Below the pieces are notes generated by a model. The model was not told the DNA's origin, did not search any database, and was given only the letters and a program-made list of their open reading frames with translations. Below are positions 2,274 through 33,106 of a DNA stretch of 64,000 nt, piece by piece. The translations under genes were made by a program, and so were the position numbers. Every line of letters starts with the position of its first letter. Position 1 is the stretch's first letter. Source of the stretch: Asterias rubens (taxonomy: Eukaryota); NCBI RefSeq assembly GCF_902459465.1, contig NC_047081.1:1736001-1800000 (forward strand), written 5' to 3'.

Positions 2274-4347
2274 CTGGTCCCAAATTCTTAAAGCTGTTAC
2301 ATCATGAGGGTTAAAGGTCAAAGCGATGTTTCTTCCTGTTGACATGACTGTCCTAGTTGTTCCTAATAAGGTCAACAAATGTTTACAGTTTATGTTATCT
2401 TTAGCACTAACATGATTCTTGCGAATGGTGGTTAGTCAAACAGTTTGCAAACTTCCACATTTGGGTGTGAAGGAGGTCAAAGTAAACATATTTTGATAAA
2501 ATGTCCTACTTGACCTTGGTGAACATTGTTTCACGCTTTCGAGTATTAGTTGTACACAGGTTGAACTTTGATGCAACTTTACCAAAAGTTTGTCTTTGTA
2601 CCAAGTACGGGATAAAGATAGAATGGGGACAATTGAGATTCAGATGCTTCCAAAAAATCAAGTTGATTGTAAATAAGATAATATGACAAATGCTGAACTT
2701 TTCACTGATAAACAGAGTGCATAGAACACCACATACAAAACGAAAGACGTACAAATATTATGAGTTCACTGTTATTGTTAACAATATTTGGCCGAGTGGC
2801 CCAGTTTTAGTAAGAGCCTACATGTATGCCGAAATTTAAAACACTTCCCCCAAAACAAAACAAAAACATCTTCACTGATAAAAACTGCAGGGTACCAGTC
2901 AAAATTTAACACTACATGCAATTTTGGCTGGTAAACTGTATCTGCTGTTCGAAGCTTTTTTTTCTCCTATTGAGTGCAACTTTTCTGTGGTTTGGCAGAG
3001 GTGTTTACTGTCAAACTACACCATACATATTTTTTATTATTATTCATCCCAGCTACATGCCTTGAAATAATGCTCTGTAAGGGGCACAGCAATTTTACTC
3101 AGGTACATGTAAGGGGCACTTTTTTGAGGACAATTTTAATTTGTGTTAGATCTTTGCAAAGGGCACCAAAATAAACCAAAACAAAAGCACAGGGCACCAC
3201 TGCAATCGCTGTGGGTGCTGTGGTTTATTTCAAAGCCTGCAGCTAGTTTTGCAGATGCATGTTACCAACAATCAAAAACCAACAGTGATACAATGTACTG
3301 TAAAAATAAGAATCCATAAGAAAGTTGCTTTTCACATTTTTAGCAAAAAAATTATGTCTAATTCTTAACTGACAATGTCGATATTCATATATATCTGCAG
3401 TATAAATAGAATCCAGCTCGGATATATTTAATCGGAACTACAAAATAATGATCACACATCTGGCGTCGTTGTTACTCTGTTAAATCTTTCCATCCACTAA
3501 AATTTGGTTTTGAAACTCATACTTCTAGAAAGAGAGGGAGGAAGTGTGTTGTTAGACAACAAATGTTAGAGTGTTAATGAGATGCTGCCGTTTTTCTTGT
3601 ATCAATTCCTCAGGAGATAGCACGGCGACATGATTATTATTTTCTTTCTGAAGAAGTAGCGATTGGTTCAAATTAGATGGCCGCTCAGAAGTCGATAACT
3701 ATCCAAAGCCTTCATAGGGGATCACTTCAAGTTGAACAAAGGAAGCACTTTTCATGTTAAGTGTCATCATGCAGACTTGCCCCTGGCGGGGTTACCTTCC
3801 ATTTAGACATTCGTATCCGACGTGCGAAATCTCTGTAGCGGATTTGCTTTAAAAAAAGGTAGGATCGGAGCAGTGCATTTAAGGCCAAGAAGCAGTCAAG
3901 ACGACGATTAAAATGATTGGTGTGAAAGTTATCCCCGCCGTCTGAAGTTACACGAAGAGATAATTTAAGGGGGGGGGGAGGTGAAATTATCAGGCAATTC
4001 AAAATTATTTCCAGGAAACTCGTTGATCGCCACTGTCCAATTTGTTGAACATCATCTTCCTTCCGCCACTCCTCTTGCTTTTTAAAATATAATTATTCAG
4101 TCAGTCTTTTTTGTAAATAATCCGCACCTTTTGATCAGAATACAGAGACTGTTTAGCTTGGTTCCGTTTTTAAAGTTGACCCTCCGATCCAGTCGACGTT
4201 GCTGTCAGGGAAATCAGGAGACCTACAGTTGTCGGAAGCATCGAGCATCAAAGCACAGTCTCCAATTATGGTCACGCTGGTTGTTACCGTTCATACAGTT
4301 TATTGGTTAACTTACAAAATCCACTACTTAAATCCTAGATCCGCGTG

Positions 4348-7300
4348 TTATATGTACTGCGCCAACCATTTGAAGGCGTCGCCGTAACCTTGTTGCTTCA
4401 AAACGCTGCACATGAACAACTCCAGAGGGCGCCCTGGCAAATCTCTTTGTGGTACATTTCCCTGTTAAACGAGACAAAGAATAGAAAAGACTTTCTTTAG
4501 GTTTGACATTAAAGGAATACGTTGCCTTGGATTGGCCGAGTTAGTCTTTGATTTGAAAGAATTTGTAACCGTTTGCTATACAATGGATATGGTTAGAAAG
4601 TAGTTTTTTAAGTAGAATACAATGATCCACACACATTTGCCTCGAAATTGCGTGACCGACCGTGTTAGTCGACGAGGTAAAAGGAAAACCAAGCAAATTC
4701 GAGTGATACTTGTGTGGATCATTATATTCTACTTTGTGAATATATTTCTAATTATATGCTTTTTATAACAAACGGTTACAAACGCTTTTCAAAGACCAAT
4801 TCAACAAATCCAAGGCAACGTGTTCCTGTAAACGGTCCCTTAGGGACTTGTAACCATAAGGTTGTGGGTTCGAATCCTACCAAGCTATCCGCTGAATTCA
4901 CAATGACTAGAATAAGTATCTGTCATCTAGCCACTGAATCAAAACTTATTGATTTGAGCAATTACGGTTTACTCTTCCAGATTGGACATAACCACTCCAG
5001 ATGGCGACATCTCCAAAACGCAACCACAGGTTATTGTTTTTGTTTAATATCTACATTGATGTAGGATAAAAACAACAGACCAAAGGTTTACGTTCCCTTT
5101 AAAGGCAGTGGACACTATTGGTAATTACTCAAAATAATTATTAGCATAAAACCTTTCTTGGTGATGAGTAATGGGGAGAGGTTGATGGTATAAAACATTC
5201 TGAGAAATGGTTCCCTCTGAAGTGCCATAGTTTTCGAGAAAGAAGTAATTTTCCACGAGTTTGATTTCAAGACCTCAGATTTAGAATTAGATGTCTCGAA
5301 ATCAACCATCTAACCGCACACAACTTCGTGTGACAAGGGTGTTTTTTTCTTTCATTACTATCTCGAAACTTCGATGACCGATTGAGCTCAAATTTTCACA
5401 GGTTTGTTATTTTATGCATATGTTGAGATACACGAACTGTGAAGGCTAGTCTTTGACAATTACCAATAGTGTCCACTGCCTTTAAAAAAAAAAAAGACAT
5501 ATTTGTAGATAGGGCTTGATCAGCTTACCTTCCCTGTTGTCTGTTGAATAAGTCCGAAACAATTCCTTATATGGTCTTCACTGCAAGCTGTGGGCATGTC
5601 AATTTTGTTCCCCAGAATCACGATGGGAGCGTTAGCGACCATCTCATCCGTCATGAGACCCTGGAAAGGATCAAGAAAAATTTTAACATTTAATTTAATT
5701 TATTAATTCGTGTTGTGAAGCCAAGGACTTTCAGAAAAGCGTACTTAATCAGTGTACTAGCCAAGAACCAAATGAGAAGAGGTAAGACAGAAAGTTTAAG
5801 TTTAAAATGTGCTGGAAAATCCCAAGGAATTTTTTTCTGGGAGAGCCCATGCTGTCAGACAGGGGCTAAAACAACACTCCATATAGTGCCCCCAGTTGGA
5901 ATTGAACCGGGAAATCACGTTGGAAGGGTGGACACAGGTTTTGCTCTGTACTTTTTCAGTGACTAGCAAGCAGGACCAGCTAGCTTGTCATTTCATTACT
6001 CCTTCAGCTTTGTCGATTTGTCAATACTTCAAATGAAATAAGAATGCTATTTAACACTGAACTTGCCAGCCGGACCAGTTGGAGTGACTTTTGACTGGTC
6101 CTCCGGTCTTTCAGCTGACATTTTTGGCCAGGGAACCACTGTTAAAGGAACACGTTGCCTTGGATCGGACGAGTTGGTCTATTAAAAGCGTTTGTTATGA
6201 AATGCATATGGTTAGAAAGATGTTTTAAAAGTAGAATATAATGATCCACACAAGTATCACTCAAAATTGCACGGTTTTCCTATTACGTCGCGAACTATCA
6301 CGGTCAGCCATTTATGGGAGTCAAAACTTTGACTCCCATAAATGGCCGACCGAGTTAGTCGACGAGGTTAAAAGAAATCCACGCAATTTCGAGGCAAATT
6401 TGTGTAGATCATTGTATTCTACTTTTACAATATCTTTCTAACCATATGCATTTTGTAACAAACGGTTACAGAACGCTTTTCAAAGACCAACTCGACCGAT
6501 CCAAGGCAACGTGTTCCTTTAAGGGAGAATGCTGGTGGCCCTTAGCTTTAAACCAAACCGGATCTTCCCGTGTACAAAAGCAAGTTACACATAATACAGC
6601 CACCAGCACATTTACATGAGAAATTCTTTTATTAATATTAACTGTATCAATATCATATATTCACATGTTTACTTTGTAAAAAAAATCAATCAGCACTCAA
6701 ACAGTGGTTTCACAAGTTAAAGGGGCTGTCTCAACATATTTATATTTTTTACTTAAAGTTCAATAATGCACATTAATTAGGTAAAAACATTAAAAAATGC
6801 AGCAAAATGAGCAATTTAAATACAGAGGAAGGAAAAAGAAACAGCTGCAACCCGAAGGATTGCCTTAAAGAAACACAGTTCCTGTCTAGAGGCTCTCCTC
6901 TCCAGCTGATCTTTAATTAGAGCACAACAATAAATACAAGCAGGCATTTGGCTGTGCACAGAATTATGGACTTTCCCCTGTCAGGCAATTACAGCATGTG
7001 CTCTTTATGAGGGGAGGGCATGCGCATGCAGTAACTGTTGAGAGTTCATAGTTCATAGTTCCATGTGCAACCACAGGCCTGCTTTGCCTTTGATCATGAC
7101 AACACCCAAGACTTACATCAAGTTCTGCTTTGGCCTCTGCGAATCTTTGAGGATCTGCTGCGTCTATGAGGAAAACGATTCCGTCAATCGCTGGTAGGTA
7201 GTCCTTCCACACTCGACGTGCCTGGGAGTGACCTCCGAGGTCAAAGGTTGTGAATGATATCGATCCCATACTAAGCGATTCTGATGCTGTGGTTGAATGA

Positions 7301-8511
7301 AATAACAATGGAATGAGTCGTAGAAACATGGTGGAATGTATTGGGTATACAAAGGCGATTTTCTCCATGCCCCCTTGGTCATTGCCCTGGTCATTGCCAA
7401 TTTCCTCATGGGGGTACAGTGTACCCCCTTTACCAAGGAGAAAATGCCATGGTGATCTGCCCCATCAAACATGAAGCATGCAGGCCTGGGGTATAGGCCA
7501 ACACAATGACTATCATGATCTCCACACTCTCCTTGTGTGGAGTACGCAGAAACTACCGACATGCAGCGATTAGTCGGTCACACTCACCATGCATGGACTG
7601 GTCGTAAGTTAGAACAAGTCCTGACTCTTTGTGAAAATAGACCTCTGGCCTTAGTTTCGAAAAGGGCTGTTAGTACACTTACTTGGATGTAACGTTGGAA
7701 CATGCTGTGCCATCCTGCCATCCTTCAGCATGTGTAGTAACGTCGTCTTCCCAGCATTGTCTAGACCAAGAAATACAAGCTTGCCACTTTTCTTCCATAG
7801 ACCTGGACAAGCAAAGGAGGGAAATGTTAAACAAGGTTTAGCGGTTATCTCAATGCTATTTATGTCTAAAAAACAAGCGCTGTGTAAATGATGAATAAAA
7901 GCTTGTGCTTGAGTTTGTCGAACACTAGATCTGCGAAGAGTTACTTAATACTCTTCATTTTGTGTCTTTGTAACAAAGAGTGTAACCATGATTGTGGGTG
8001 TACACAAAGGCTAAAAAGAATAGAAATGAAAATAGACAGAGTTAAGAAATCTACAGTTATATGTACATGAGGCTGATATTGCAGTCCTGATCTTTTCTAT
8101 TGGATTTATTACAAATGCCCAAACGCTAGTTACTTTTTATGCATGGGCAGATGGTTATTTCCATTCTGGAACAACATTTGTTTTTCATGCTGGTACTTCT
8201 AGCTAGCACACATACACCTAACATTTTTTAAAGGGGAGCACAGTATTAATAGACGTGGGCATTATGTTGGCAAAGAACTGTTCAAATTAGATATGTAATT
8301 GTAAGGCAATGGAGCAAACTTATTTGACATATATTGCCGAAAATGCAGTTTATTAAAAACAAGATGGAAATTAATGTTCTCATGAAAACTTCAAAGTCAA
8401 ATGCAAACTAAATTTGTAACGTCTTATAAATTAAAACACTCCATTAATTTAGACTTTTGTTAACTTACCAACATAACTAAGAAAATCTGTGAACCAATTT
8501 ACAATAAACAT
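4348..8511 (-). CDS. SAR1: Small COPII GTPase SAR1, 192 aa; exons 8469..8511, 7683..7802, 7117..7286, 5529..5660, 4348..4461
   Basis: Spliced protein [40 protein letters not shown]...[13 protein letters not shown]...VILGNKID...[23 protein letters not shown]1, G3 and G4 GTPase motifs and an amphipathic N-helix are present. All introns are GT-AG; total 579 nt, in frame. Confidence 0.97.
4513..4827. mobile_element. Kolobok-like MITE, family K2 (older copy), SAR1 intron
   Basis: ttaa|aggaatacgttgccttgga ... tccaaggcaacgtgttcct; same family as 6146-6518. Confidence 0.75.
5103..5481. mobile_element. Kolobok-like MITE, family K1 (full length)
   Basis: TTAA TSDs at 5099-5102 and 5482-5485. TIR aggcagtggacactattggtaatt / aattaccaatagtgtccactgcct. 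RR...YY termini with a TTAA TSD fit the Kolobok superfamily. Confidence 0.85.
6146..6518. mobile_element. Kolobok-like MITE, family K2 (full length)
   Basis: TTAA TSDs at 6142-6145 and 6519-6522; 35-bp TIRs with one mismatch (aggaacacgttgccttggatcggacgagttggtct). Confidence 0.88.
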
Positions 8512-8729
8512 CTTGGTTTTTTTATGGTCACACTCTGCAACAAAGAGAACAATAAAACAATAGTTTAGTAATTTTAAAGCAGTAAATATAAACATGATAA
8601 ACAATAGATTTGTAAAGCCATGAATGAGAGCATGAACATAAATTATATAAATCAATATATATTAATAGCATCCCCCCCCCCCCCAGGCCGAGACGAATCA
8701 TCGTGGGCATGTGAGACTGCGTAATTTTT

Positions 8730-8862
8730 TGAAAAAGTTTCCGTATGGCGCCACCACTTTTTCATTCGAAATAAAATAATATAGTATCTAATTTACCTGA
8801 TTGATATATCCCTTTTTGTAAAAATGAGTGAAAAAGTGGTGGCGCCATAAGGAAAGTTATCA
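8730..8862. mobile_element. ~135-bp MITE (GTGGTGGCGCCATA family), in SAR1 5' UTR intron
   Basis: TIRs aagtttccgtatggcgccaccacttttt / aaaaagtggtggcgccataaggaaagtt. Second copy at 11013-11147; fragments at 170-630. Confidence 0.8.
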
Positions 8863-9213
8863 AATTTTTTCTTTACTATTTTAAACTTTATAATTTACAA
8901 TTATATTTATAATTTATTGTGATCGATCGGCAATGCCAATGGGCAAATGATGGTAATCAATAATATCTATTTTCTTATTTACAACCTAAATACAACAGCA
9001 ACAAAACCACATTCACATCACAACAATGTGATCAAAAATTACAAACATAATTTACTGTCAAATGACAATGTCATTTGTCAATATTGAATACACATACACA
9101 CGTACACAGCGCAGCAGCTGATCTGTAAAAGGTAGGCGAAGAAAACACTCAAAATTCTAGCACTAAAACTCTTTTAACAGCTCCTTTGAAAACAGTTTTA
9201 TCTCATTACTCAC

Positions 9214-10521
9214 CTTTTCAATGAATTCCACCCAGTACTACCTTACTAATTAATTATTGTACAACCAAAACACAAAGAATGGCGTTATTTCCACCTCGAA
9301 AAAGACGATCTGTTACAGTTCAAGGAACGAATCCACACCAAAATGGTCATATTTAACTTTACGTCACAAAACTTACCGGAAGATGGTTTTTAAACAACGC
9401 GTTTCATTGGTCAATTTTCATTCACACTAAAATACGTTTTTAACACGAGATTATCTGTAAACCAACAACAAAAACATTTAGAAAAGTATTTACAGAATTA
9501 AAAATATTGTTAGGGGAAATGCGTCAACAAATTCATGAAATTAGTAAAATTGTAAGTTGTATTTGCATAATTAAGTGTTAAACCTTAAGGAGGAGAACGC
9601 CCAATCACAGCAGATTTTAAGACGAGTTCGGCTGTCAAAATTGGCCGGATAAATGGGAACCACAGTAAGAAATACTACGGGTGATTTCAGCTAGCTATTG
9701 AGGGCGCCCCCCGTTGAAACACTACTTACGCAAGAGAAAGCACTTGATGATTTATGTTGTCCTAATAAATAAAAGGGTTGGACGGGAGAAATAAACAGTA
9801 AATGCTTTCTGAATGTTTTATTTTAGGTAATCATTGATTTATTTTTTATTTTTTTTAAATCAAACTGGCCACGCGCAGCGCAAATCCTTGAGGGGCGGCA
9901 GGATCTCACTCGGCTTTCATAATAGGCACTTCTGATGAAGACCATACTCGAAACGTTGTCTAGTTGTTTCGATTGCCCCCACATAAACTTGAAAAGAGAG
10001 TAAGGTCTTCTGTTAACATCACCTCTTGAGTCTTATTTGGTATAAATTTAATCTGGGACTCGATAGAAACTTTATTTAAAAAAACTTCATTCCATGTTCA
10101 GACTGACTTTTGCGATGTATTTTTGACATGTTTCTGAATGCGTTTTTACACCTTGATCATAGGGCGAGCTCCCCCGAGAATTTTAACTTCGTGATATTTT
10201 TTGGAAGTGCCACGTTGAAAACGTGATCATTTTACGCATGCACCTTTGGCTAGTCTACGAAATGGGTTTTCCTGAATCTTCAACAATGGCGACTGTCATT
10301 GACTCTCGGTCGTGACAATGCTTTTAATTTACGTAATGTTTCGCCTGGCAGCAAATCTTATTCTGTAAATTTAAGTTCACACATTCTACAGGTATTCCCA
10401 AGTCTGACTGTTATCTTCAACTCGTCGCTGTGAACTGTGCGTTGTAGCCGCGTTGAACGAGTGTTAATTTCTGATTTATGACGCAATTTTCGTGAGCGGT
10501 GACTCAGTGACACAATTCAAG
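9214..10521. promoter_or_regulatory. Divergent (bidirectional) promoter region SAR1/SEC24, including a probable non-coding SAR1 exon 1
   Basis: Lies between divergent start codons (8511 and 10522). Minus-strand donors AAG|gtgagt (9214) and CCG|gtaagt (9377), with a matching acceptor ttgcag just above the SAR1 ATG exon. ETS/YY1-like ccggaagatgg (9376), CCAAT boxes (~9406, ~9601), YY1 caagATGGCGG at the SEC24 start, and bZIP-type motifs. Confidence 0.6.
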
Positions 10522-13500
10522 ATGGCGGACTCTCGCCAAAATGCCTATGCAAACGCCCAGCAGCCGATGAAAATCCCGGGTTCTGGTCCGCCTCCCCAAG
10601 GAATCTCTAGTGGAATGGGACCACCATCTGCAAGTGAGTAGTTATTGAAATCAAACAATTTTTAATTTTTAAAATGATTAACAACATTTACATTCTGTGG
10701 GGCGGGGGGGGGGGGGGCTCTAAATTTGACTGGACATTTTTTAATATCTGTTTTTCTCTTTTTTTTATCAGCTGGTTATTTGAATTTACTGACAAAAAGT
10801 GTTAACCTTTATCAGACTGAGTGAGACGACTTTCTGCGGTCACTCAACTCTTAAATAAACAAATTTAGGACAAGTGAAGAATAATATTTAAAAGAAAAGG
10901 TGATGAGTTAGAATCTGACTGCAATTATTATAAGGTTATTGCGTAAGTCCACTTGAATTAAAGATTTAATTAACAATTGGTTTTTCCCAACACCTGTGTG
11001 TGTAAATGAAATGGAAAAGTTTCCGTATGGCGCAACCACTTTTCATTCGTTCTGAAATACTAATTTACCTCAAGAAAACTCAATACTCAATGATATCCCT
11101 TTTTGTAAAAAATTAGTTAAAAAGTGGTGCCATTCGGAAAGTTATCCAATGAAATATTACCAAAGTCCAGTCGGTATGAGTCCTGACTATATATTATGGT
11201 GCAAACATTTTTGTTTTTAAACAGGGCCATCAATGGGACCCCCAGGTCCAGGAGGACCTACCCCATCAGGGAACTACAACAATCCATCTGGAATGAACGT
11301 ACCAAGGGGCTACAACCAAGGTCCGCCACACACTGCTAATGGTGCTCACCCTACCAACAACCCTCCCACTGGCACTACAGGCTACCGACCCTCGCCCATA
11401 GACCATCGAAGTGGTTTGGTTAACGCTAACTCGGGCAGAGCTCAAACTCATTCAATGGGTGGTTACCAACCCACTGGTACTGCGAACTCAACCCAGGGTG
11501 GTCGAGGGGCACCGATGATTGGTTACCCTGTTGCGAACAGCAGGGGACCGCCGGGTAACCCACCCTCGATGCCGAATCAGTACTCTGGCCCCTCGCAGCC
11601 AGTGAACTCATATCCTGGACCACACCAAGCTGTGCCATCAAGTTCCGCTGGATCTGGACCCCCATCTAGAGTGGCAGCACCGCCCTCGAGTATGCCCCTC
11701 CCTGGTGGGTCGCTGCCTGGCGGCCCTGGAAACTATGGTCGGTCAGGGTCGTATGGAGGTCCTGGCACACCTCCCGTCTCCATGGACTCACCTTCAACTC
11801 CCGATGGGTCTGGGATAGACCGAAGCTTCAACTCATCAGGTTAGTAGGTCGTTGAAGAAAACAAGTTTGATGATAAAAGAATGTCTGACAGAGTGTCCTC
11901 GGAGGGAGTCCCCCCAAAATGTGTGTTCCCTGCCTTGCTCATTTATTCCTTGCTAGTGATCATTGAAGGAGTGGTGGGGAGGGGGGCTCCAGTAATGTGT
12001 ATGACGCGACTTTTGCTGAATGTCAGAAAAATTGCCACCACTCACGCTGGCACATGATCAAGGCATCAAAGCACAGTAGACGTTAGTAAATATATAAAAC
12101 ACTGACAATGGATTGGCAATGTATGTCAGTAAAATTTGACTTGGACCGATTTCATAAAGAGCTAAGATTGATGTTAAGTGTGAATCCATCTTGACTGCTA
12201 AGCAAAGTTTGATGTCACTTTGTGAAATCAAAATGACCTACATTTAGTAACTTGCGTGACATCATATTGAGGTTCTATTTTTAGCATTAGTGCAGAGTGT
12301 GGTATTTACTTAAGTAGACATGATTCTGGGTTCTTGTTAAGCCAAAGCCAAATGGAGATTTTTGTATGGCTCTGGCTGTTTGACTTTGACCAATTGGAGA
12401 CTTTGGAACACTAGGTGACAGCAGACTTACCGATAAATATCCATTGTTTATGTAGTTCTGAGCATGCGCACATTGCTGTGAGCAATGGATTTACCTGGTA
12501 AGTCTGCTGCCACCTAGCACCCCAAAACTCCCCCGGACAAAATAAAATAGGCAAAGCTCTGACCTGGACTAATTCTAACGGCTTTTAAGCAGGAAATCTT
12601 GCATGAGAAATAATTTGTGCTAAGCAAAAGTCAGGAAACCAGTCAGTTTATGCACTTTTCATCACATGGTATTTTGGCTGGTCACCCAGTATGCTCAGCA
12701 AGAGTTTTCTGTGCCACATTGTAAGCATTTTTGTTGTGTATGGATAACATTGGCCCTAAGACTTAGACATAATAACTACAACTACATACATAGAAAGGAC
12801 CCACAGAGCCTATAACTTGTACTATGTAGTTATTTAACGAAAACCATTCATTGGTTTGCTCTGACATAAACAAGATGGCGGCAACTAGTTCATCATAGAT
12901 CATTGGATAATCTCTTGATATAATTTTGCCTGTGCACCCCCCCCCCTAATTAATTTCACCTGCAAAATCATAAACCCATGGTATTTTAACACCCATTTTC
13001 CTGACTCACACGCATCCAATACCCTCCCCTTTTGTTTATTTTCTGTGGTTACTGTTTTAATATCTGCCTGCACGGCTCTGTTATGACGCCTCCTTGTTTG
13101 CCCGTTCGCCTTAAAAAAAAACACCCAAAAGGCGAGGCCCTACAGGTGCCGAGGTACACCTCCATGATACGTTCACCCTCCACTGGATCCTTGGGCTCGC
13201 TCCCGTTGCCCAAACTGCAGCTGCAGTCCTCGTCCCCAACGGCCGAGGTTGGGAGTTATTCACCGGGCGATTCAGGTATTGCCTTTCCGAATGATTAATT
13301 TTTTGTCTGCTTTCTGCTTCAAAATTCTTTCGCTGTGTGACGTCTGGCTGTTGTGGTGGTAGTAGCTTTTAGTAATCTCATCAGCTATTGTTTGCTTTGT
13401 CCTTCAGTATGCTTTGATATTAGCTGTTCACATTGTTTTCTTCATGAATCAACAGAACATCACATGTCTCTCTGCATGTCTCATCACATGTCTCTGTGCA

Positions 13501-22500: not shown

Positions 22501-25500
22501 CACAGTTGTGCCACCCTACAAAACCTGTCTACTTGTATGGTTTTGAAGGGTTAGTCAGCTTGCTGGAAAATGATTGGTCTTGTAACATGCCTGGACATCT
22601 TTCATTTATTTTATTGGCGTTGATAACAAAATCTCTTACTCCTCTTGTCACCCATGAAGTTCATGCCCTCTTCATTTTTTACTAAATTCTGCGTAGCTGG
22701 TGTCGCAAAATACTCCGGCGGCAGCGTGCACTATTACCCAGGGTTCAACAGCACTCAGAACCTCGTAGAGGTGGAGAGGTTCGGCCAGGACTTCCGGCGA
22801 TACCTGACGAGAAAGATTGGGTTTGAGGCAGTGATGAGGATCAGATGCACAAAAGGTAAGAAGAAAACCTCGCAAGATTTGACTGGGTTTTTTTTAAACC
22901 TTTTTTGTCTTATTTTTGGTTTTAATAATCTTTGTTTATTCGATGTATTCCAACAAAAAACCTCACAAGATTTGTTTAACTCTTGTGTGAAATCCACCCC
23001 AGAAAGATCATGTTCTTACTTAAACCCGATTTCCATACCCGTTAAGGTTTGAGCATCCACACATTCCATGGGAACTTCTTCGTCCGGTCGACGGATCTCC
23101 TCTCCCTTCCCAACATCAACCCAGACGCCGGCTTCGCTATGCAGGTCTCCATCGAGGAAAGCCTTCATGACTCCCCAGTGGCATCTTTCCAAGCAGCGTT
23201 GCTCTACACAAGCAGTAAAGGTCAGTATCAGCTCTTGGTCATGTTCCTCACACCCCCCTAGCAATGATACACTCACAATTTCTTAGAAACAAGTTCCCTG
23301 TATACACTAGCTATAGTACATACAGATTTGTTTAGATATCTAGAGGGCCCGACTATTTTTTGTTTATCTTAGTTTCAGTGATGACTCTCTAAATTCTGAA
23401 GCCATGTTAGTCAAGTTCCCTGCATACAGTAGCTATGGTAATAAGAGATTCAAAAGGGCCTGACTATTTTTGTTTTTCATAGTTTCAGTTAGGACTCTCA
23501 ACTTTGTCCACCATATTTGTTAACTTCACTGTATTCAGGAGTAATGCATATAGATATGTATAGAAATCAAGAGGACCAGACTATTTGTTATTCAAGCCTC
23601 TGTTTGGTTACATTGATTCATACGAAAGAAAACTTGATATGCTAATGATATGCAAATTATCTCCCCTTATGAATGATTCAGGAGAGAGACGGATTCGTGT
23701 TCACACCATGTGCCTGCCAGTGTCCAATCAGATGACGGAGATCATCGCAGGGGCGGATCAGCAAGGCATTATGGGATTACTCACCAGAATGGGTAAGGTT
23801 TGATTGTCTTCTGTCCCTTACGGTTGCCTCAGTTCTTGGGTCCCATGGTTGGCTTGTGCGTAAAGCGCTGGCCTCTCACCACTGTGACCCTGGTTTGATT
23901 CCCGGCAAAGGTTTTGGTTGTTTTCTACCTCCCTTACGGTTGCCTCAGTTCTTGGGTCCCATGGTTTGCTTGTGCGTAAAGCGCTGGTCTCTCAACACTC
24001 GCCGTGGTTCGATTCCCTGCTTAGGTATCATTTTTTTTTTAAATATGAAACATGTTTCAATAAACCTTTTTTTAATTGAATTGAATTGAATTGAAAAAGC
24101 ATTTTATGCTCTCTTCATTGTGTTGGAGTTGACTAGTATCTACTCTTTCCTATTTTCAGCGGTCGACAAATCTCAGACGTCGAACATGTCAGACGCTCGG
24201 GATGCGTTGGTCAACGTCTGCGTAGATTCGCTGTCGATGTACAAGGCGACGCTACCAAGCAGTCACACCGTTGGGACGTTGATGTGCCCTCAGTCGCTAC
24301 GCATGCTGCCATCTTACACACTGGCTGCATTAAAAAACGTAAGAATTCCAACTGCAATTTTATGGATAAACTTTCCTACTTGTCAGTGAGTTGATTTACC
24401 CTACGAAACTCTTCAACTGCAAGGGTTTTGTATAGTGGAGCAATTGTGTGTTGTGTAGATGCATTTACCACATTAGATCATATTGCATTCTGGCATAGTT
24501 TATCTATCAAACAAGACACAGTTAATGATATTGAATGGTCAGACGGTAGGAGGGTTGACTGTGTACTTTGTAGAATGCAATCACCACATGATATCATAGT
24601 TCGAGCTGGCTAAGTTTATTGATCCTTCAAAGCCACAGTGAATGATATTTAATAGTCAGACAGTAGGAGGGTTTACTGTGTACTGTGCAGATGCAATCAC
24701 CACATGATATCATACTGCTGGCTGGCAAACTTTATCCATCATTCACAATCACAGTGGATGATATTCAATATTCAGATAGTAGGAGGGTTAAGTAAATGAT
24801 ACTTTCTTGTAATAATATAATAATATTAGTAAACATTTCTATGGCGCTCTACAATGAACACAGCACCGCACAAGAAAAACAAAATAACATAAGTAGAAAA
24901 CATAGCTAAAGAAAACTACTTGTACCACAACTCTAACAGACAATACGATTGGTTGGAATATCCAGAGCCTTAACCAACGAAGCCAATCACATCTTGTCTT
25001 TCAGGTGGCCTTCCGTCTGGGCTCGAGCACCAGACTGGACGAGAGGGTGTATGCGATGGAGATGATCAAATGTCAACCTCTGCAATACATCATGCTTCGT
25101 CTTCATCCCAACATGTACCCGGTGCATAACATGTCAGATGAGGTAGGCTGAACTTAATAAGGGGAAAAAATTAGTTTCTGGTTACATAGGATCACTAGAT
25201 CAGAAATACATTTTTAATTGAGTGTGCATTATATTTTGAGTTGTGACACAGAATGTCTCTTGAAATTTGTAAAAAAAACATAGCGTCTTCACTAGTATGA
25301 CTTTTAATGAAAAATGTGTGTTCCCGAAAGAGAGGCAAAATATATGTATTATTTATCAACGCTTCTATTTACTACCATGTAAACTCTTCTTGTTAATCAA
25401 TGTTTTTTGGTATGTATAAAACTGTTGTTACCCTCAAAAACATCACCCTGGGGGGTTATAGGGTTATGTTCCTGCAGCCGATGTCACAAAACGCTAGGAT

Positions 25501-27250
25501 TAATCCTATCTTGAGTTAGGGTGAGTTAACTTAGGATGGGTTCAATGCGTCCTACGCCTTGGGATACGTACTTAACTCGTCCAAAGTCTAAGATTAATCC
25601 TAAGTTAAGAAGAGTTTGGTGAAATCGACGGCTGAACTTTAAAAAAAACAGTCACTCAATTATTATCGTCATTAGAAATTGATTATTATGATTAATGCAG
25701 GGTGCAATCCTCATCAACGATCAGTCAGTCCCCCAGCCTCCGATCCTGGGTCTAACTTCTGAGTACATCGAGCGTAACGGAGCCTACCTACTGGACTGTG
25801 GAGACGCCATGATCCTGTTTGTCAACCGGGCGATCTCCATTTCATTCTGTATGGAAATCCTTGACGTGCCTAACTTCCAGTCCATCCCCGAGGAAATGGT
25901 ACGTTCCATTCTCTTTTACTGATTTGACTCCACAGTGGAGTGTCCATTTTGTTTGTAGGTGATGTGTTGTTGTTATTTAATATTATTTAACTTGCAACAG
26001 TGTGCCCATATAAATACTGGTATTTGTAAATGAAATATTGCATAATAATTTCTATGATTTGTTCCCCATTTGACAGGTAATGGTGACCTTTTGTATTTTG
26101 AAATTTTGTTATTTTGTGAAGGATATTCACAGAATGATTTGTATATTTACTTCCTAAGTTGTCATTATGTTAACATTATTCAGATTAACTATAATTGTTT
26201 TCTTCATGTGAGGTTTTAGCATTTCATTTGAATGCCAAATTTTAATATGGGTTGTTCCATTTTCCCTTCAGTAATTAAAGTTTTCTAATTTTCTGTAGAT
26301 GTAAGTGAATTTATTTCATACTGTAGTAACCATGTTTTAATTAGTGTTTGGTAGATTAGGCCTACAAGGTATTTCTGTCCTTAGTACATGTATATGGACT
26401 ATTCCATTATGCTTCCAGCTTATTACTGACTGGCATGTTCCATTTCTCCAACAGGTGGACTTACCGGAGCTTGCCAACCAAGCCTCAGAACGACTGAGGA
26501 CGTTCATCCTGTGGTTATTAGATAAGCGGTCGTGCTCTGCACCCCTCCAAATTATTAGGTAAATACTCCCCCCCCCCTTCATCACACCCCATCAACACCC
26601 CACCCCTAAGTAAATAAGGTAAAAACATGCTTAACACAGACAAATCTTGCTTAACAAAAACTGGTTACCAGCCAAAGTTCCTTAAAATTTTCATTGTTGC
26701 AACTGGTGCCCCACTCAAAGAAAGTTGCTAAGCAGTATGTTCTGCCTAACAGCGTTATGAAATTGGGCCCAGTCTCAACTTTCCACCGATGATTTTCTGT
26801 TTAAAAACCACTGGGGCCCCATTGCATGGCTCTGCTTACCATAAGCAAGGAATCAGCGCTTACGTTAAGCAGGGAATTACGGGCTTACGTCAGTCGTATT
26901 TCACAGGATAGCTCGAGATGTTTTGCTAGTACGTGTGCTAACTCTTTATTACTAGGCATTCTTTACTTACACAGCTAGCACAGAAGTTCAGTGCTTGCAC
27001 AGTAAGCAGATAATGGGAGTCGTATTCACAGCATTGGGCGGTATGCAGAGCCATGAAATTTGGCCCACTTTACTGGTCCCAAACTCAACTAAGTCTTAAT
27101 TAATTTCCTTCTTTTTTTTTTTTTTTCTCTCTCTGTAGGGAAGACAGTAAGAAGCGTACTTTATTCCTACGACACTTGACCCAGGATCGCACGGAATCCT
27201 CCATGTCATACTATGAGTTCTTGCAACACCTACAAAAGGAGATCAAGTAA
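10522..27250 (+). CDS. SEC24A/B: COPII cargo adaptor Sec24, SEC24A/B type, 1259 aa; exons 10522..10633, 11225..11839, 16467..16568, 16890..17530, 17969..18144, 18572..18674, 19169..19295, 19899..20008, 20181..20412, 20891..20946, 21107..21208, 21823..21927, 22339..22462, 22697..22855, 23047..23220, 23682..23792, 24160..24338, 25005..25142, 25701..25898, 26455..26558, 27139..27250
   Basis: Pro/Gly-rich disordered N-terminus, Zn finger (RCRSCRTYINPF...WKCNLC), trunk/vWA (RPPQPAVYLFVLDVS), beta-sandwich (GFEAVMRIRC, GERRIRVHT), helical and gelsolin domains, and C-terminus SYYEFLQHLQKEIK*. All 20 introns are GT-AG and phase-consistent; total 3780 nt. Confidence 0.96.
11013..11147. mobile_element. 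~135-bp MITE (GTGGTGGCGCCATA family), SEC24 intron 1
   Basis: GG...CC termini with TIRs, flanked by AAT/AAT; homologous to 8730-8862. Confidence 0.78.
12397..12532. mobile_element. MITE (GGAGACTTT / GCAGCAGACTTACC family)
   Basis: Inverted termini ctaggtgacagcagacttacc / ggtaagtctgctgccacctag. Inverted second copy at ~56875-57016. Confidence 0.75.
13132..13275 (+). CDS. Candidate alternative (cassette) coding exon of SEC24, 48 codons
   Basis: 144 nt, phase 1 to phase 1, matching the flanking junctions (11839/16467). GC-rich open frame GEALQVPRYTSMIRSPSTGSLGSLPLPKLQLQSSSPTAEVGSYSPGDS; donor CAG|gtatt; weak AAG acceptor. Confidence 0.5.
14490..14760. mobile_element. Degenerate tRNA-like repeat (312-bp family) with two arms in inverted orientation
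   Basis: Homologous to 43857-44325. The left arm is the reverse tRNA-like segment; the right arm is the forward tRNA-like segment plus tail. Confidence 0.6.
16973..17242 (+). repeat. Coding 15-bp minisatellite, ~18 pentapeptide units (G-G/A-P-Q-M) in SEC24 exon 4
   Basis: Repeats such as ggtggaccccaaatg / ggtgctccccaaatg translate as GAPQM/GGPQM. Confidence 0.92.
17700..17800 (+). mobile_element. 3' remnant of an L2/CR1-clade LINE ORF2
   Basis: Translates as NTLSAFRKVLKSHLFPS*, the typical F-K-x2-LK-x-x-LF terminus of L2/CR1 ORF2. Confidence 0.5.
18178..18405. repeat. 75-bp tandem repeat x3 including the left end of a CAGGCCTG-type MITE
   Basis: atgtcaaagact... recurs at 18185, 18260 and 18335; the MITE body continues to ~18520. 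Confidence 0.88.
18956..19100. mobile_element. Harbinger-like MITE (GTCGATTTCAC family)
   Basis: ccgtcgatttcac ... gtgaaatcgaccc termini. Related copies at 25478-25631, 45372-45840, ~49235-49400 and 51040-51141. Confidence 0.75.
19340..19480. repeat. (ATATTGA)n microsatellite
   Basis: Degenerate 7-mer array. Confidence 0.85.
23289..23590. repeat. Degenerate ~122-bp tandem repeat (~2.5 copies)
   Basis: caagttccctg..tacactagctat...gactattttt recurs at ~23290 and ~23412, with a partial copy at ~23550. Confidence 0.65.
23813..24020 (+). mobile_element. Duplicated degenerate tRNA-derived SINE head
   Basis: cctacggttgcctcagttcttgggtcccatggtt...gcgctggcctctcaccactgtgaccctggtttgattccc occurs twice, with a B-box-like ggtt(c/t)gattccc. 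Confidence 0.55.
24440..24790. repeat. ~117-bp tandem repeat x3
   Basis: cacagt..atgatatt..at.gtcaga..gtaggagggtt at 24517, 24634 and 24750. Confidence 0.8.
25478..25631. mobile_element. Harbinger-like MITE (GTCGATTTCAC family)
   Basis: cagccgatgtcac ... gtgaaatcgacggctg termini; internal ggattaatcct palindromes. Confidence 0.75.
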
Positions 27251-27587
27251 CGAGTCTTCATCTCATGTAAGCACAGCACGAACAGATTGCCAGCTTACCA
27301 AGTAACCATACCATGTAATGAGTCTTCATTCCATGGGTCTGTTAAGCAGAGAGATTCTATGCTTAGCACGAACAGATTGCCAGCTTACCAAGTAACCATA
27401 GCATGTAATGAGTCTTCATTCCATGGGTCTGTTAAGCAGAGAGATTCTATGCTCAGCACGGACAGATTATCAGCTTACCAAGTAACCATAGCATGCAATG
27501 AGTCTTCACCCCATGGATCTGCTAAGCACAGAGATTCTACGCTTAGCCTGGACAGATTACCAGCTTACCAAATAACCATAGCATGTA
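27251..27587. repeat. 90-bp tandem repeat (~3.7 copies) starting at the SEC24 stop codon
   Basis: cagcttacca at 27291, 27381, 27471 and 27561 (period 90). Confidence 0.92.
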
Positions 27588-28339
27588 TACTGTCATTAAT
27601 ACCTTAATTCCATCTCCCGAAGTTTCAAGCAGGTTATTTTGCAGAGCAATTTGATGAATTTTGCCCAGGTTTAAGGTTTATTGAAGTGTGTCACCAACCC
27701 CCCTTTCCCCAAACTCTTAGAAAAGAGATCTGACAGTTTCCCTGTCCATGGGTTAAGTGAAAGGGTGTTCGAACTGAGGCAATGTTGTCTTTTGAAAGGT
27801 TGCATGACTGGACAGAGATTTTCTGTGCACAGTTTGCATTCACCACATGACGCATTGCTGGTTGACATGGTGCATTCATCTTACAAAACCACACGATTGA
27901 TAGTGGAGGGTCGACCTCAGTCTCTGCGTGCTGGAAGTAAAATACTGATTTCACTATTATAGGCTTGGGTTTTGCAATTTTCCAAACTCCCCCCTGTCAA
28001 TTGTGACGCTACCTGACATCAAAAGTAATGTACAATTCATGAGGTACAAAACAACCACACCTTGACTTGGGTTGCATACTTAAAGTTTTTATCTTAAAAA
28101 TAGAAGGTGGCAATCTACCATTATATAAACTTCAGTCTTTTACTGTCTATTTCTAAACCTCATTTTTACTTTAACCCCTGACTATCAAAACTTAACCCTT
28201 CCCAATTAAGAACTTACCCTACCTCAACCTATTTGAAACCCTATCCAAGTTATATGCAAAATCCTTTACCCCTACCTCATCATTCAAACCAAAACCGTAC
28301 CCCACTGATGAACCAAAATGTATTGAAAATGATCTTATC

Positions 28340-32863: not shown

Positions 32864-33106
32864 TGACGTCATTCAGCGAATGTTGTATTTGTAGTTTTGC
32901 AGCCGGTTAAAGCGGTTTATGACCAAAGTACATGTACGTGCAGTCGACCCCTTTTGCGAAGGCTGGCTGATCTTAAATATACACAAACTATGTCCTCTAG
33001 ATCACAATCAAAGTTAGACTGGGTTTAAAGACGAACATCTGTGTAAGGTCGGCTATAATTGTTGTGTGTGATCTATATAAAAAAAAAGTATATTCCTCGA
33101 GCCGCC
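32864..33106 (+). promoter_or_regulatory. CYP proximal promoter: CRE (32864-32871), TATA box (~33074-33082), Kozak GCCGCC
   Basis: TGACGTCA, TATATAAAA and GCCGCCATG read directly from the sequence. Confidence 0.55.

Follow-up and report, generated by a model that had tools for sequence, protein, structure and literature searches.

SAR1 is the GTPase that starts assembly of the COPII coat and Sec24 is the cargo adaptor, and the two act at the same step of coat assembly. The human genes SAR1B and SEC24A are adjacent at 5q31.1, with opposite directions of transcription and about 15 kb between them, and their co-regulation via the intervening DNA, through an erythroid SOX6/GATA1 site as the shared element, has already been proposed (Barbarani et al. 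2017, PMC5658338). The gene lists for cattle and pig show that SEC24A adjoins SAR1B there as well (PMC9300179, PMC4912826). Divergent, functionally linked housekeeping genes with short spacers are also found among the ancestral microsyntenic pairs conserved across phyla; almost every species studied retains HSPD1-HSPE1, with a spacer of <1 kb (Irimia et al. 2012, PMC3514665). In a third system, the CrebA/CREB3L regulon, COPII genes are co-induced in trans by one bZIP family via promoter-near boxes with an ACGT core, and in HeLa cells Sec24A and Sar1A are among the COPII genes that Creb3L1 induces (Fox et al. 2010, PMC3003312).

Here we discuss a SAR1 gene (minus strand) and a Sec24A/B-type gene (plus strand) of the sea star Asterias rubens. 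They lie in the window, a 64,000-nucleotide stretch of contig NC_047081.1, and diverge with 2,011 bp between the ATG at 8511 and the ATG at 10522. The pair resembles human SAR1B-SEC24A, an arrangement that the first-pass annotation of this DNA had cited correctly, in adjacency, opposite direction and the same two COPII functions. However, 0.88 kb separates the mRNA ends in the sea star, SAR1B and SEC24A are paralogues that postdate duplications, against a single SAR1 and a single Sec24A/B in the sea star, and the SOX6/GATA1 site enters the comparison as a human feature only. It likewise resembles HSPD1-HSPE1 in being divergent and functionally linked with a short spacer; unlike that pair, SAR1-Sec24A/B is kept in some lineages only and its orientation is not universal. 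The likeness to the CrebA/CREB3L regulon is one of sequence and lies in a ACGTGGCA-type box at the Sec24A/B promoter and also near Sec23 and Sec24C/D. In contrast to that regulon, the conserved 11-mer discussed below is longer than the consensus, and the SAR1 side has a different, CRE-like site. A conserved divergent SAR1-Sec24 pair would be unusual among animals, in that the order of genes would follow the make-up of a protein complex.

The two genes and the spacer between them

The spliced SAR1 product matches the protein "SAR1b-like [Asterias rubens]" (P0123) in tblastn at 100% in every exon apart from HSP overhang, and the introns are supported by the RNA joints 7286>7683 and 7800/7802>8467/8469 (see the table for the exons). 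The protein carries the SAR1-type G motifs (GLDNAGKT P-loop, DLGGH switch II and NKID) in an Arf-family GTPase domain and fits the SAR1 plan, which includes an N-terminal amphipathic helix and a length of about 190-200 aa. The Pfam family PF00025 is precomputed on the cluster representative, a related sea-star SAR1 (P0002), and identity to named SAR1 proteins is about 80% across phyla. Searching the A. rubens genome with P0002 returned only the window locus at 74-91% identity, and the remaining matches are only 33-38% identical. Hence, the gene is a single-copy SAR1 orthologue and not an Arf/Arl paralogue.

Sec24A/B comprises about 21 coding exons, from 10522 to 27247, which encode a product of 1259 aa. 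In tblastn these exons match "Sec24A-like [Asterias rubens]" (P0277, 1259 aa) at 100%, except for HSPs overrunning into intron, with exon 1 accounting for residues 1-37, also at 100%. The product fits the Sec24 architecture, in which a Pro/Gln-rich N-terminus precedes zinc finger, trunk, beta-sandwich, helical and gelsolin-like domains; Pfam assigns PF04810, PF04811, PF08033 and PF04815 to P0277, which is identical to the Sec24 of the window. In the PDB comparison, residues 512-1258 of P0277 align to the SEC24B crystal chain, and the scores are 1063 bits for SEC24B and 1030 for SEC24A versus 371 for SEC24C and 343 for SEC24D. The exon at 20181-20426 alone gives 126 bits to SEC24B, 110 to SEC24A and 58 to SEC24C/D. 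A separate paralogue in the same genome (C21:0.43 Mb) scores best to SEC24C. The genome thus has three Sec23/24 loci, Sec24A/B, Sec24C/D and Sec23, and the window's Sec24 is its sole Sec24A/B-type cargo adaptor. In the tree, where a very long outgroup branch makes the root unreliable, this Sec24 falls in an invertebrate clade (support 100/100) outside the vertebrate A and B groups. Going by this placement, the sea-star gene is the pre-duplication co-orthologue of SEC24A and SEC24B together, and orthology to SEC24A specifically is not supported.

Transcript ends were taken from RNA contigs assembled from four runs, with GT..AG joints. The joint 8534>9214, which defines the non-coding first exon of SAR1, is present in contigs X1 record 1 (2845 nt) and X5 record 18 (2819 nt), where CT..AC on the plus strand corresponds to GT..AG on the minus strand; the exon is also found in runs X2 and X4, from a related species. 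For the MITE-like repeat inside the 5'UTR intron, a first look at the genome gave 1349 candidate copies with 92-100% identity, and the repeat region at 8733-8861 shows very high RNA contig depth with many loose ends. Exon 1 of Sec24 begins no later than 10226, since contig X1 record 4 spans 10226-10633 and is joined to 11225 (GT..AG). The outermost contig ends, which cannot fix exact TSSs, are 9346 and 10226 and place the mRNA 5' ends at most 879 bp apart, an upper bound.

Within the spacer (9347-10225), the Rfam search matched no family, no other genomic copies were found in the 417.6 Mb genome, and no repeat is present, the MITE lying outside it. RNA depth is zero in the bins covering 9505-10172 in all four runs, the depth in the edge bins being that of the SAR1 and Sec24 first-exon contigs. 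The CpG observed/expected ratio is about 1.0-1.7. In operational terms this is a bidirectional pair: the genes are head-to-head, with no gene between them and mRNA 5' ends, taken as contig ends, <1 kb apart. A spacer of 880 bp may leave room for shared enhancers. Collectively, the gene models, tblastn matches and RNA contigs confirm the head-to-head pair as first annotated, with both genes correctly named and Sec24 of A/B type; the distances proposed there, about 2.0 kb between ATGs and about 1 kb between TSSs, agree with the values given here.

Table. Features of the SAR1-Sec24A/B locus (positions in the window)
Feature	Position	Strand	Details
SAR1 coding region	4348..8511	-	five coding exons and stop; 192 aa
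SAR1 coding exons	8511-8469, 7802-7683, 7286-7116, 5660-5529, 4461-4351; stop 4350-4348	-	splice sites read directly
SAR1 5'UTR intron, 679 bp	8535..9213	-	RNA joint; MITE-like repeat at about 8721-8910 inside
SAR1 non-coding first exon (5'UTR)	9214..9346	-	spliced to 8534; 9346 is the 5' end of the longest contig
Spacer between mRNA 5' ends, 879 bp	9347..10225	.	single copy, without RNA contig
SAR1-proximal motifs	9359..9382	-	CRE-like GTGACGTAA (plus-strand ACGTCA 9361-9366) and ETS-like CCGGAAG 9376-9382; pattern scan
Conserved Sec24 core-promoter/5'UTR block	10165..10298	+	CGAGCTCCCCCGAGAA 10165-10180, TGCCACGTTGA 10208-10218, CGCATGC 10235-10241, CAATGGCGACTGTCA 10284-10298
Sec24A/B exon 1	10226..10633	+	5'UTR of at least 296 nt, ATG 10522, then 37 codons
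Other Sec24A/B coding exons, about 20	11225..27250	+	exon 2 11225-11841; last 27131-27247 and stop

Synteny of SAR1 and Sec24A/B across animals

The synteny survey comprised 12 locus look-ups, with cnidarian, amphioxus and arthropod loci left out and the vertebrate state taken from the papers cited above. In Patiria, which belongs to a second sea-star order, SAR1 and Sec24 are also head-to-head, with 2.85 kb between the coding starts. In the brachiopod Lingula, 3.4 kb separates the genes, which are arranged in tandem, in the order DCTN5(-), Sec24(+), MRPS24(-), SAR1(+). Here, each of the two has a short divergent spacer with another partner, 389 bp for Sec24-DCTN5 and 732 bp for SAR1-MRPS24. 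In the hemichordate Glandiceps they lie on one chromosome 2.55 Mb apart, and in Lottia the pair is absent and other neighbours are present. Within 10 kb of the examined locus, no SAR1/Sec24 partner is present in Amphiura (brittle star) or Diadema (sea urchin), and none was called in Holothuria (sea cucumber). In Holothuria, 6.3 kb upstream of SAR1 and pointing away from it, there is a promoter module of Sec24 type (TGCCACGTTGG, then ACGCATGC, then GGCGACT), which hints at a divergent layout beyond the asteroids. On a larger scale, SAR1 and Sec24 are on equal-sized contigs in all eight species with both recorded, implying the same scaffold or chromosome, and SAR1, Sec24A/B and Sec24C/D are all on one sea-star chromosome.

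Adjacency is thus retained in two asteroid orders, human, cattle and pig, is nearly retained in Lingula, and is lost in Glandiceps and Lottia. Because close linkage is also present in a brachiopod, the SAR1-Sec24A/B linkage probably predates the echinoderm-vertebrate split. The first-pass annotation had dated the whole arrangement, if orthologous, to before this split; the old linkage is probable (Patiria, human, Lingula), whereas adjacency and orientation are not general (Glandiceps, Lottia, Lingula). It had also named the lack of adjacency in other invertebrates in advance as evidence against its reading, and this is the situation in Glandiceps and Lottia, as well as within the 10-kb range given above for Amphiura, Diadema and Holothuria. 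This old linkage, still present in sea stars and mammals, is dispensable, being retained in some lineages only; therefore, the pair is not an operon-like unit. The suggested module under cis-regulatory constraint finds no support in genes that are split in Glandiceps, absent as a pair from Lottia and re-oriented in Lingula. This outcome tempers the idea that gene order tracks the protein complex.

Promoter motifs at the spacer edges

The motif clusters on the SAR1 side and on the Sec24 side are about 0.85 kb apart, one per gene. The CRE-like and ETS-like motifs near SAR1 are putative factor binding sites. The block on the Sec24 side aligns with Patiria at 78% over 64 nt (blastn and alignment, E=8.6e-10), and conservation between Asterias and Patiria is confined to this edge; the middle of the spacer is not conserved. 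Upstream of Sec24A/B in five taxa, the 11-mer TGCCACGTTGA is letter-identical and has CGCATG(C) within about 8-20 nt downstream, a conserved element that is new here. The 11-mer, in sense orientation, precedes the Sec24 coding start by 215-336 bp in four taxa and by 2.8 kb in Diadema, and it is the only k-mer of >=9 bases common to all five upstream regions. Shuffling these regions 300 times produced no shared 10- or 11-mers, and the 417.6 Mb sea-star genome contains TGCCACGTTGA 89 times. Moreover, the 11-mer remains with Sec24 regardless of whether SAR1 is adjacent. Boxes of the form TGCCACGT also precede Sec23, and at Sec24C/D they lie no more than 4 kb upstream of the first exon detected. 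Judged by consensus motifs, TGCCACGTTGA is a putative site of CREB3L/CrebA type; its second half-site is imperfect relative to that consensus (CAAC, not TGAC).

A brachiopod, echinoderms and a hemichordate share the TGCCACGTTGA-CGCATG(C) element with identical letters and orientation, over a span of >500 million years, and conservation of promoter-level sequence across phyla is rare. These features raise the possibility, to which we give slightly less than even weight, that the element anchors a COPII regulatory unit inherited from ancestral bilaterians, whose original role also extended to the adjacent SAR1. In this scenario it would constitute a testable cis element for the control of secretory capacity, probably bound by a CREB3L/CrebA-type factor.

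Regulation and origin of the divergent pair

The most satisfactory account, and one that we consider likely, is a real divergent pair of two single-copy COPII housekeeping genes that have two core promoters, are a remnant of an old linkage and are co-expressed in trans. One core promoter would be situated at each edge of the spacer, that of SAR1 comprising the CRE-like and ETS-like sites and that of Sec24 the block TGCCACGTTGA ... CGCATGC ... GGCGACT. The neighbourhood would be a leftover of old linkage, with the tight divergent layout kept in sea stars and mammals, a local rearrangement of the pair in Lingula and loss in other lineages. COPII co-expression would most likely come about in trans, with a common CrebA/CREB3L-like factor of bZIP type working through ACGTGGCA-type boxes close to the individual genes, and obligatory sharing of one promoter would not be needed.

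The first-pass annotation had instead placed the two genes on a single shared promoter. In this model, a bidirectional promoter couples SAR1 and Sec24A/B in an operon-like manner, and selection on the shared cis-DNA has kept the pair head-to-head since before the echinoderm-vertebrate split. The distance of <1 kb between mRNA 5' ends, free of genes, repeats and RNA contigs, agrees with this model, as do the same orientation in Patiria, the reported shared SOX6/GATA1 element and joint induction of the human pair (PMC5658338) and the typically divergent layout of conserved microsyntenic pairs (PMC3514665). However, SAR1 and Sec24 have separate proximal motif clusters, the deeply conserved block is present only at the Sec24 edge next to an unconserved spacer middle, and the conserved element accompanies Sec24 alone. 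In Glandiceps, Lottia and Lingula the pair is broken up or rearranged, and no partner is present within 10 kb in Amphiura and Diadema, with none called in Holothuria; in Lingula, SAR1 and Sec24 each share a short divergent spacer with a different gene. Contig depth, a weak measure, also differs 4.6- to 49-fold between the SAR1 and Sec24 mRNAs over the four runs. A single shared promoter is thus not supported and we regard it as unlikely.

That the genes shared only an ancestral chromosome, and became neighbours through separate rearrangements in asteroids, the Lingula lineage and vertebrates, with neither ancestral adjacency nor function, would accommodate the differences in orientation and intervening genes between Lingula and sea stars, the 2.55 Mb in Glandiceps and the three other echinoderm classes sampled, whose loci showed no close partner, but it is very unlikely, as three separate (near-)adjacencies of two given genes among ~20,000 are improbable even within one linkage group and the Holothuria module hints at a wider divergent layout.

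The 11-nt Sec24A/B element, tractable in sea-star embryos, may offer a way into how secretory capacity is scaled in animals. An ancestral layout with SAR1, Sec24A/B and Sec24C/D on one chromosome, as in the sea star, would also explain the human distribution, in which SAR1B and SEC24A are on 5q, SAR1A and SEC24C on 10q, and SEC24B and SEC24D on 4q.

Gene models, paralogy and transcripts of the pair

The window carries SAR1 and Sec24A/B as a divergent pair, as the first-pass annotation had observed, and the 2,011 bp between the start codons match exactly the spacing that it gave. The window, G000:C21:1736001-1800000, belongs to an assembly of 417.6 Mb. The spliced SAR1 product of 192 aa is identical to P0123, annotated as "GTP-binding protein SAR1b-like [Asterias rubens]", and the gene is single copy in the A. 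rubens genome. P0277 ("Sec24A-like [Asterias rubens]", 1259 aa) matches at 100% at all Sec24 exons, except where HSPs overrun exon boundaries. Two short tandem arrays, seen as repeated open-frame peptides, are present at 18179-18511, within a Sec24 intron (three units of ~25 codons each), and at 27251-27604, directly after the Sec24 stop and probably in the 3′UTR (three to four units of ~29 codons each). Downstream of Sec24, an open frame at 33059-33499 and onward (~33-40 kb) has a cytochrome-P450-type N-terminus, with a membrane anchor followed by LPPGPWGLPYFG.

Features of the SAR1–Sec24A/B region and of related A. rubens loci. Bare positions refer to the window; G000 is the A. rubens assembly, C21 the contig holding the window, C1 a second contig, and L027 and L029 are inspected loci.
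Feature	Position	Strand	Remarks
SAR1 coding exons (5)	8511-8469, 7802-7683, 7286-7116, 5660-5529, 4461-4351	minus	canonical splice sites read from sequence
Sec24A/B gene, ~21 coding exons	ATG 10522, end 27247	plus	exon matches to P0277
MITE-like element with terminal inverted repeats	~8721-8910, core 8733-8861		in SAR1 5′UTR intron
TGCCACGT boxes as TGCCACGTCG (two)	G000:C1:25,207,168 and 25,209,113 (L029)		upstream of Sec23
TGCCACGT box as TGCCACGTATGG, CATGCGC nearby	L027 3580 = C21:429,580		<4 kb upstream of first detected Sec24C/D exon

Against solved structures in the PDB, P0277 scores 1063 bits with human SEC24B and ~1030 with human SEC24A, followed by yeast Sec24 (437), human SEC24C (371) and human SEC24D (343); one Sec24 exon searched alone ranks these proteins in the same order. 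The A. rubens genome holds three Sec23_trunk loci, i.e., the Sec24 discussed here, a Sec24C/D-type gene (C21:0.43 Mb) and Sec23 (contig C1). In a maximum-likelihood tree, whose root is unreliable given a very long outgroup branch, the A. rubens protein groups with Patiria and Acanthaster, nested in echinoderms and then Ambulacraria, inside an invertebrate Sec24 clade (100/100). Rooting on C/D exons from the same genome was rejected as long-branch attraction. The "A/B" label assigned earlier is right, while orthology to SEC24A specifically is not borne out, the gene sitting apart from both vertebrate SEC24A and SEC24B. It is sensibly read as one pre-duplication gene that would be co-orthologous to SEC24A plus SEC24B.

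Assembled contigs from four public runs were placed on 7000-12000, and their GT..AG joints identify them as RNA-derived. For SAR1, two contigs (2.8 kb each) carry the joints 7286>7683, 7800/2>8467/9 and 8534>9214 and extend to 9346; hence, the first SAR1 exon (9214-9346) is non-coding and the 5′UTR intron measures 679 bp. A Sec24 contig covers 10226-10633, joined to 11225-11840, and the Sec24 5′UTR is therefore at least 296 nt. These contig ends place the 5′ ends of the two mRNAs at most 879 bp apart, which confirms the "about 1 kb" between start sites proposed beforehand; the figure is a maximum for the spacer because contigs cannot place true start sites. None of the four runs gave an RNA contig over 9347-10225. 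Depth is zero across bins 9505-10172, and that in the two edge bins stems from the first-exon contigs of SAR1 and Sec24. Depth ratios between the two mRNAs were left out as expression evidence, contig depth being a weak measure.

No other copy of the spacer exists in the genome, and the sole repetitive part of 8535-10225 is the MITE-like element, for which a first look across the genome gave 1349 candidates at 92-100% identity. Many unrelated transcript contigs also contain this element, and its depth in them is very high. An Rfam scan of 8300-10700 returned only hairpin matches below threshold, located on the MITE (MIR5380 and MIR6224, ~30 bits vs the 150-171 needed), and inspection of the spacer by eye found no ERSE (CCAAT-N9-CCACG). 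The intergenic region is bordered by two homopolymer runs, C14 at 8673-8686 (SAR1 5′UTR intron) and G17 at 10700-10716 (Sec24 intron 1).

SAR1–Sec24 linkage across animals

In Patiria miniata, which belongs to another asteroid order, SAR1 and Sec24 are likewise head-to-head, with coding starts 2.85 kb apart. Chordate arrangements were taken from publications. Human SAR1B is [quoted passage not shown], and a shared SOX6/GATA1 element has been proposed for the two genes (PMC5658338). In cattle and pig, SAR1B adjoins SEC24A in ordered gene lists (PMC9300179, PMC4912826).

Departures from this layout were seen in other invertebrates. In the brachiopod Lingula the gene order is DCTN5(-), Sec24(+), MRPS24(-), SAR1(+), such that SAR1 and Sec24 are in tandem, 3.4 kb apart, with one gene in between. 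The divergent partners there are Sec24/DCTN5, with 389 bp between coding ranges, and SAR1/MRPS24, with 732 bp. The Lingula anatina Sec24 annotation (LFEI02000116.1, locus L025, 1809-26464) comprises two separate models, one of 486 aa for the Pro/Gln-rich N-terminus and one of 858 aa for the core; the 486-aa model is a mis-split Sec24 N-terminus. In the hemichordate Glandiceps, SAR1 and Sec24 share a chromosome at a distance of 2.55 Mb and SAR1 is preceded by an HMG-box gene, and in the mollusc Lottia SAR1 is flanked by NAD synthase and MRPS24. In tblastn searches, the 10 kb on each flank of SAR1 yielded no Sec24 exon in any of Holothuria, Glandiceps, Amphiura and Lottia, and the 10 kb on each flank of Sec24 in Diadema yielded no SAR1 exon; in Amphiura and Holothuria, Sec24 is neither called nor detectable within 10 kb of SAR1.

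Irrespective of local order, the records carrying SAR1 and Sec24 are equal in size in all eight species where size is stated (Asterias, Patiria, Acanthaster, Amphiura, Glandiceps, Owenia, Lingula and Tubulanus), and in each of them the pair must therefore lie on one scaffold or chromosome. MRPS24, the SAR1 neighbor in Lingula, is two genes upstream of SAR1 in Lottia, and in A. rubens it is on the same chromosome as the pair, 1.6 Mb away (C21:120,319-121,237). The Sec24C/D-type paralogue is on this chromosome as well, 1.3 Mb from the pair (C21:433,500-440,600; loci L027/L028). The human map positions are 5q31 for SAR1B and SEC24A, 10q22 for SAR1A and SEC24C, and 4q25-26 for SEC24B and SEC24D, a parallel distribution that would fit an ancestral chromosome bearing SAR1, Sec24A/B and Sec24C/D, like sea-star C21.

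Collectively, these data are read as an ancient, probably bilaterian linkage. Some lineages have retained tight adjacency, and the pair can clearly be broken up. An "operon-like" module is not supported, given that the pair is split or rearranged in Glandiceps, Lottia and Lingula.

A conserved Sec24 element and proposed COPII gene regulation

In a blastn-type comparison of the intergenic region with Patiria, significant non-coding conservation is confined to the Sec24 edge (10158-10221, E = 8.6e-10), where the blocks CGAGCTCCCCCGAGAA, GAAGTGCCACGTTGAAAA, CGCATGC and CAATGGCGACTGTCA are identical. The SAR1 edge carries a CRE-like GTGACGTAA and an ETS-like CCGGAAG less than 40 bp from the contig end and cannot be aligned with Patiria. 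The box TGCCACGT also lies directly upstream of Sec24A/B, in sense orientation, in Glandiceps, Lingula and Diadema, and alignment of the five taxa reveals a common 11-mer, TGCCACGTTGA, followed by CGCATG(C). When k-mers were counted without bias in the 3 kb preceding each of the five coding starts, the 11-mer was the sole shared k-mer of at least 9 bases; among 300 shuffles, none had a shared 10- or 11-mer and 0.7% a shared 9-mer. The A. rubens genome has only 89 copies. The 11-mer precedes the coding start by 215-336 bp in four taxa and by 2.8 kb in Diadema. Moreover, Sec24 keeps it whatever its divergent neighbor, be it SAR1 (sea stars) or DCTN5 (Lingula, 389 bp spacer), and also in Glandiceps, where the neighbor is not SAR1.

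The ACGTGGCA half of the element presumably matches the CREB3L/CrebA-type bZIP consensus, and CGCATGC resembles half of an NRF1 site, both being putative assignments. An ACGT-core CrebA motif has been reported at secretory-pathway genes, and Creb3L1 induces Sec16A, Sec23A, Sec24A, Sec24D, Sec31A and Sar1A (Fox et al. 2010, PMC3003312). The 10 kb upstream of sea-star Sec23 contain two TGCCACGT boxes, vs ~0.17 expected. Together with the box near Sec24C/D, this pattern suggests a common bZIP-type box at several A. rubens COPII genes. In the most economical model, COPII genes would be co-regulated in trans via TGCCACGT-type boxes, and SAR1–Sec24 adjacency would be an ancestral linkage, retained yet non-essential. 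Shared enhancers in the 0.88 kb spacer might nevertheless contribute to co-regulation of the two genes. Of the original proposal, the divergent pair itself is confirmed, and the interpretation placed on it has partial support.

Both the human gene pair and its proposed co-regulation have already been described (PMC5658338), and conserved divergent gene pairs are a known class (PMC3514665). SAR1 and Sec24 are unmentioned in Dávila López et al. 2010, and a keyword search found no bidirectional-promoter or microsynteny literature naming them. We found no publication on echinoderm or brachiopod SAR1–Sec24 linkage or on a conserved Sec24 promoter element; large synteny tables may list the pair.

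A near-identical counterpart of the Sec24 element occurs in Holothuria leucospilota (CM055980.1, locus L002, ~3690-3760, minus strand), where TGCCACGTTGG, 18 nt, ACGCATGC and GGCGACT are followed by a GTAAGT donor-like site. It is situated 6.3 kb upstream of SAR1, is directed away from SAR1, and overlaps an unnamed gene model of 112 aa on the opposite strand. When the sequence behind the module was searched at low stringency for an exon encoding the Sec24 N-terminus, nothing convincing emerged, a weak result because this N-terminus is of low complexity. The module resembles a Sec24 promoter with an unannotated first exon, which hints that the divergent layout might also exist in sea cucumbers. 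In Glandiceps (locus L005), a plus-strand TGCCACGTTGG at 5867 precedes the SAR1 coding start by 4.1 kb in sense orientation, with Sec24 2.55 Mb away, and may be a copy of the element that belongs to SAR1 itself.
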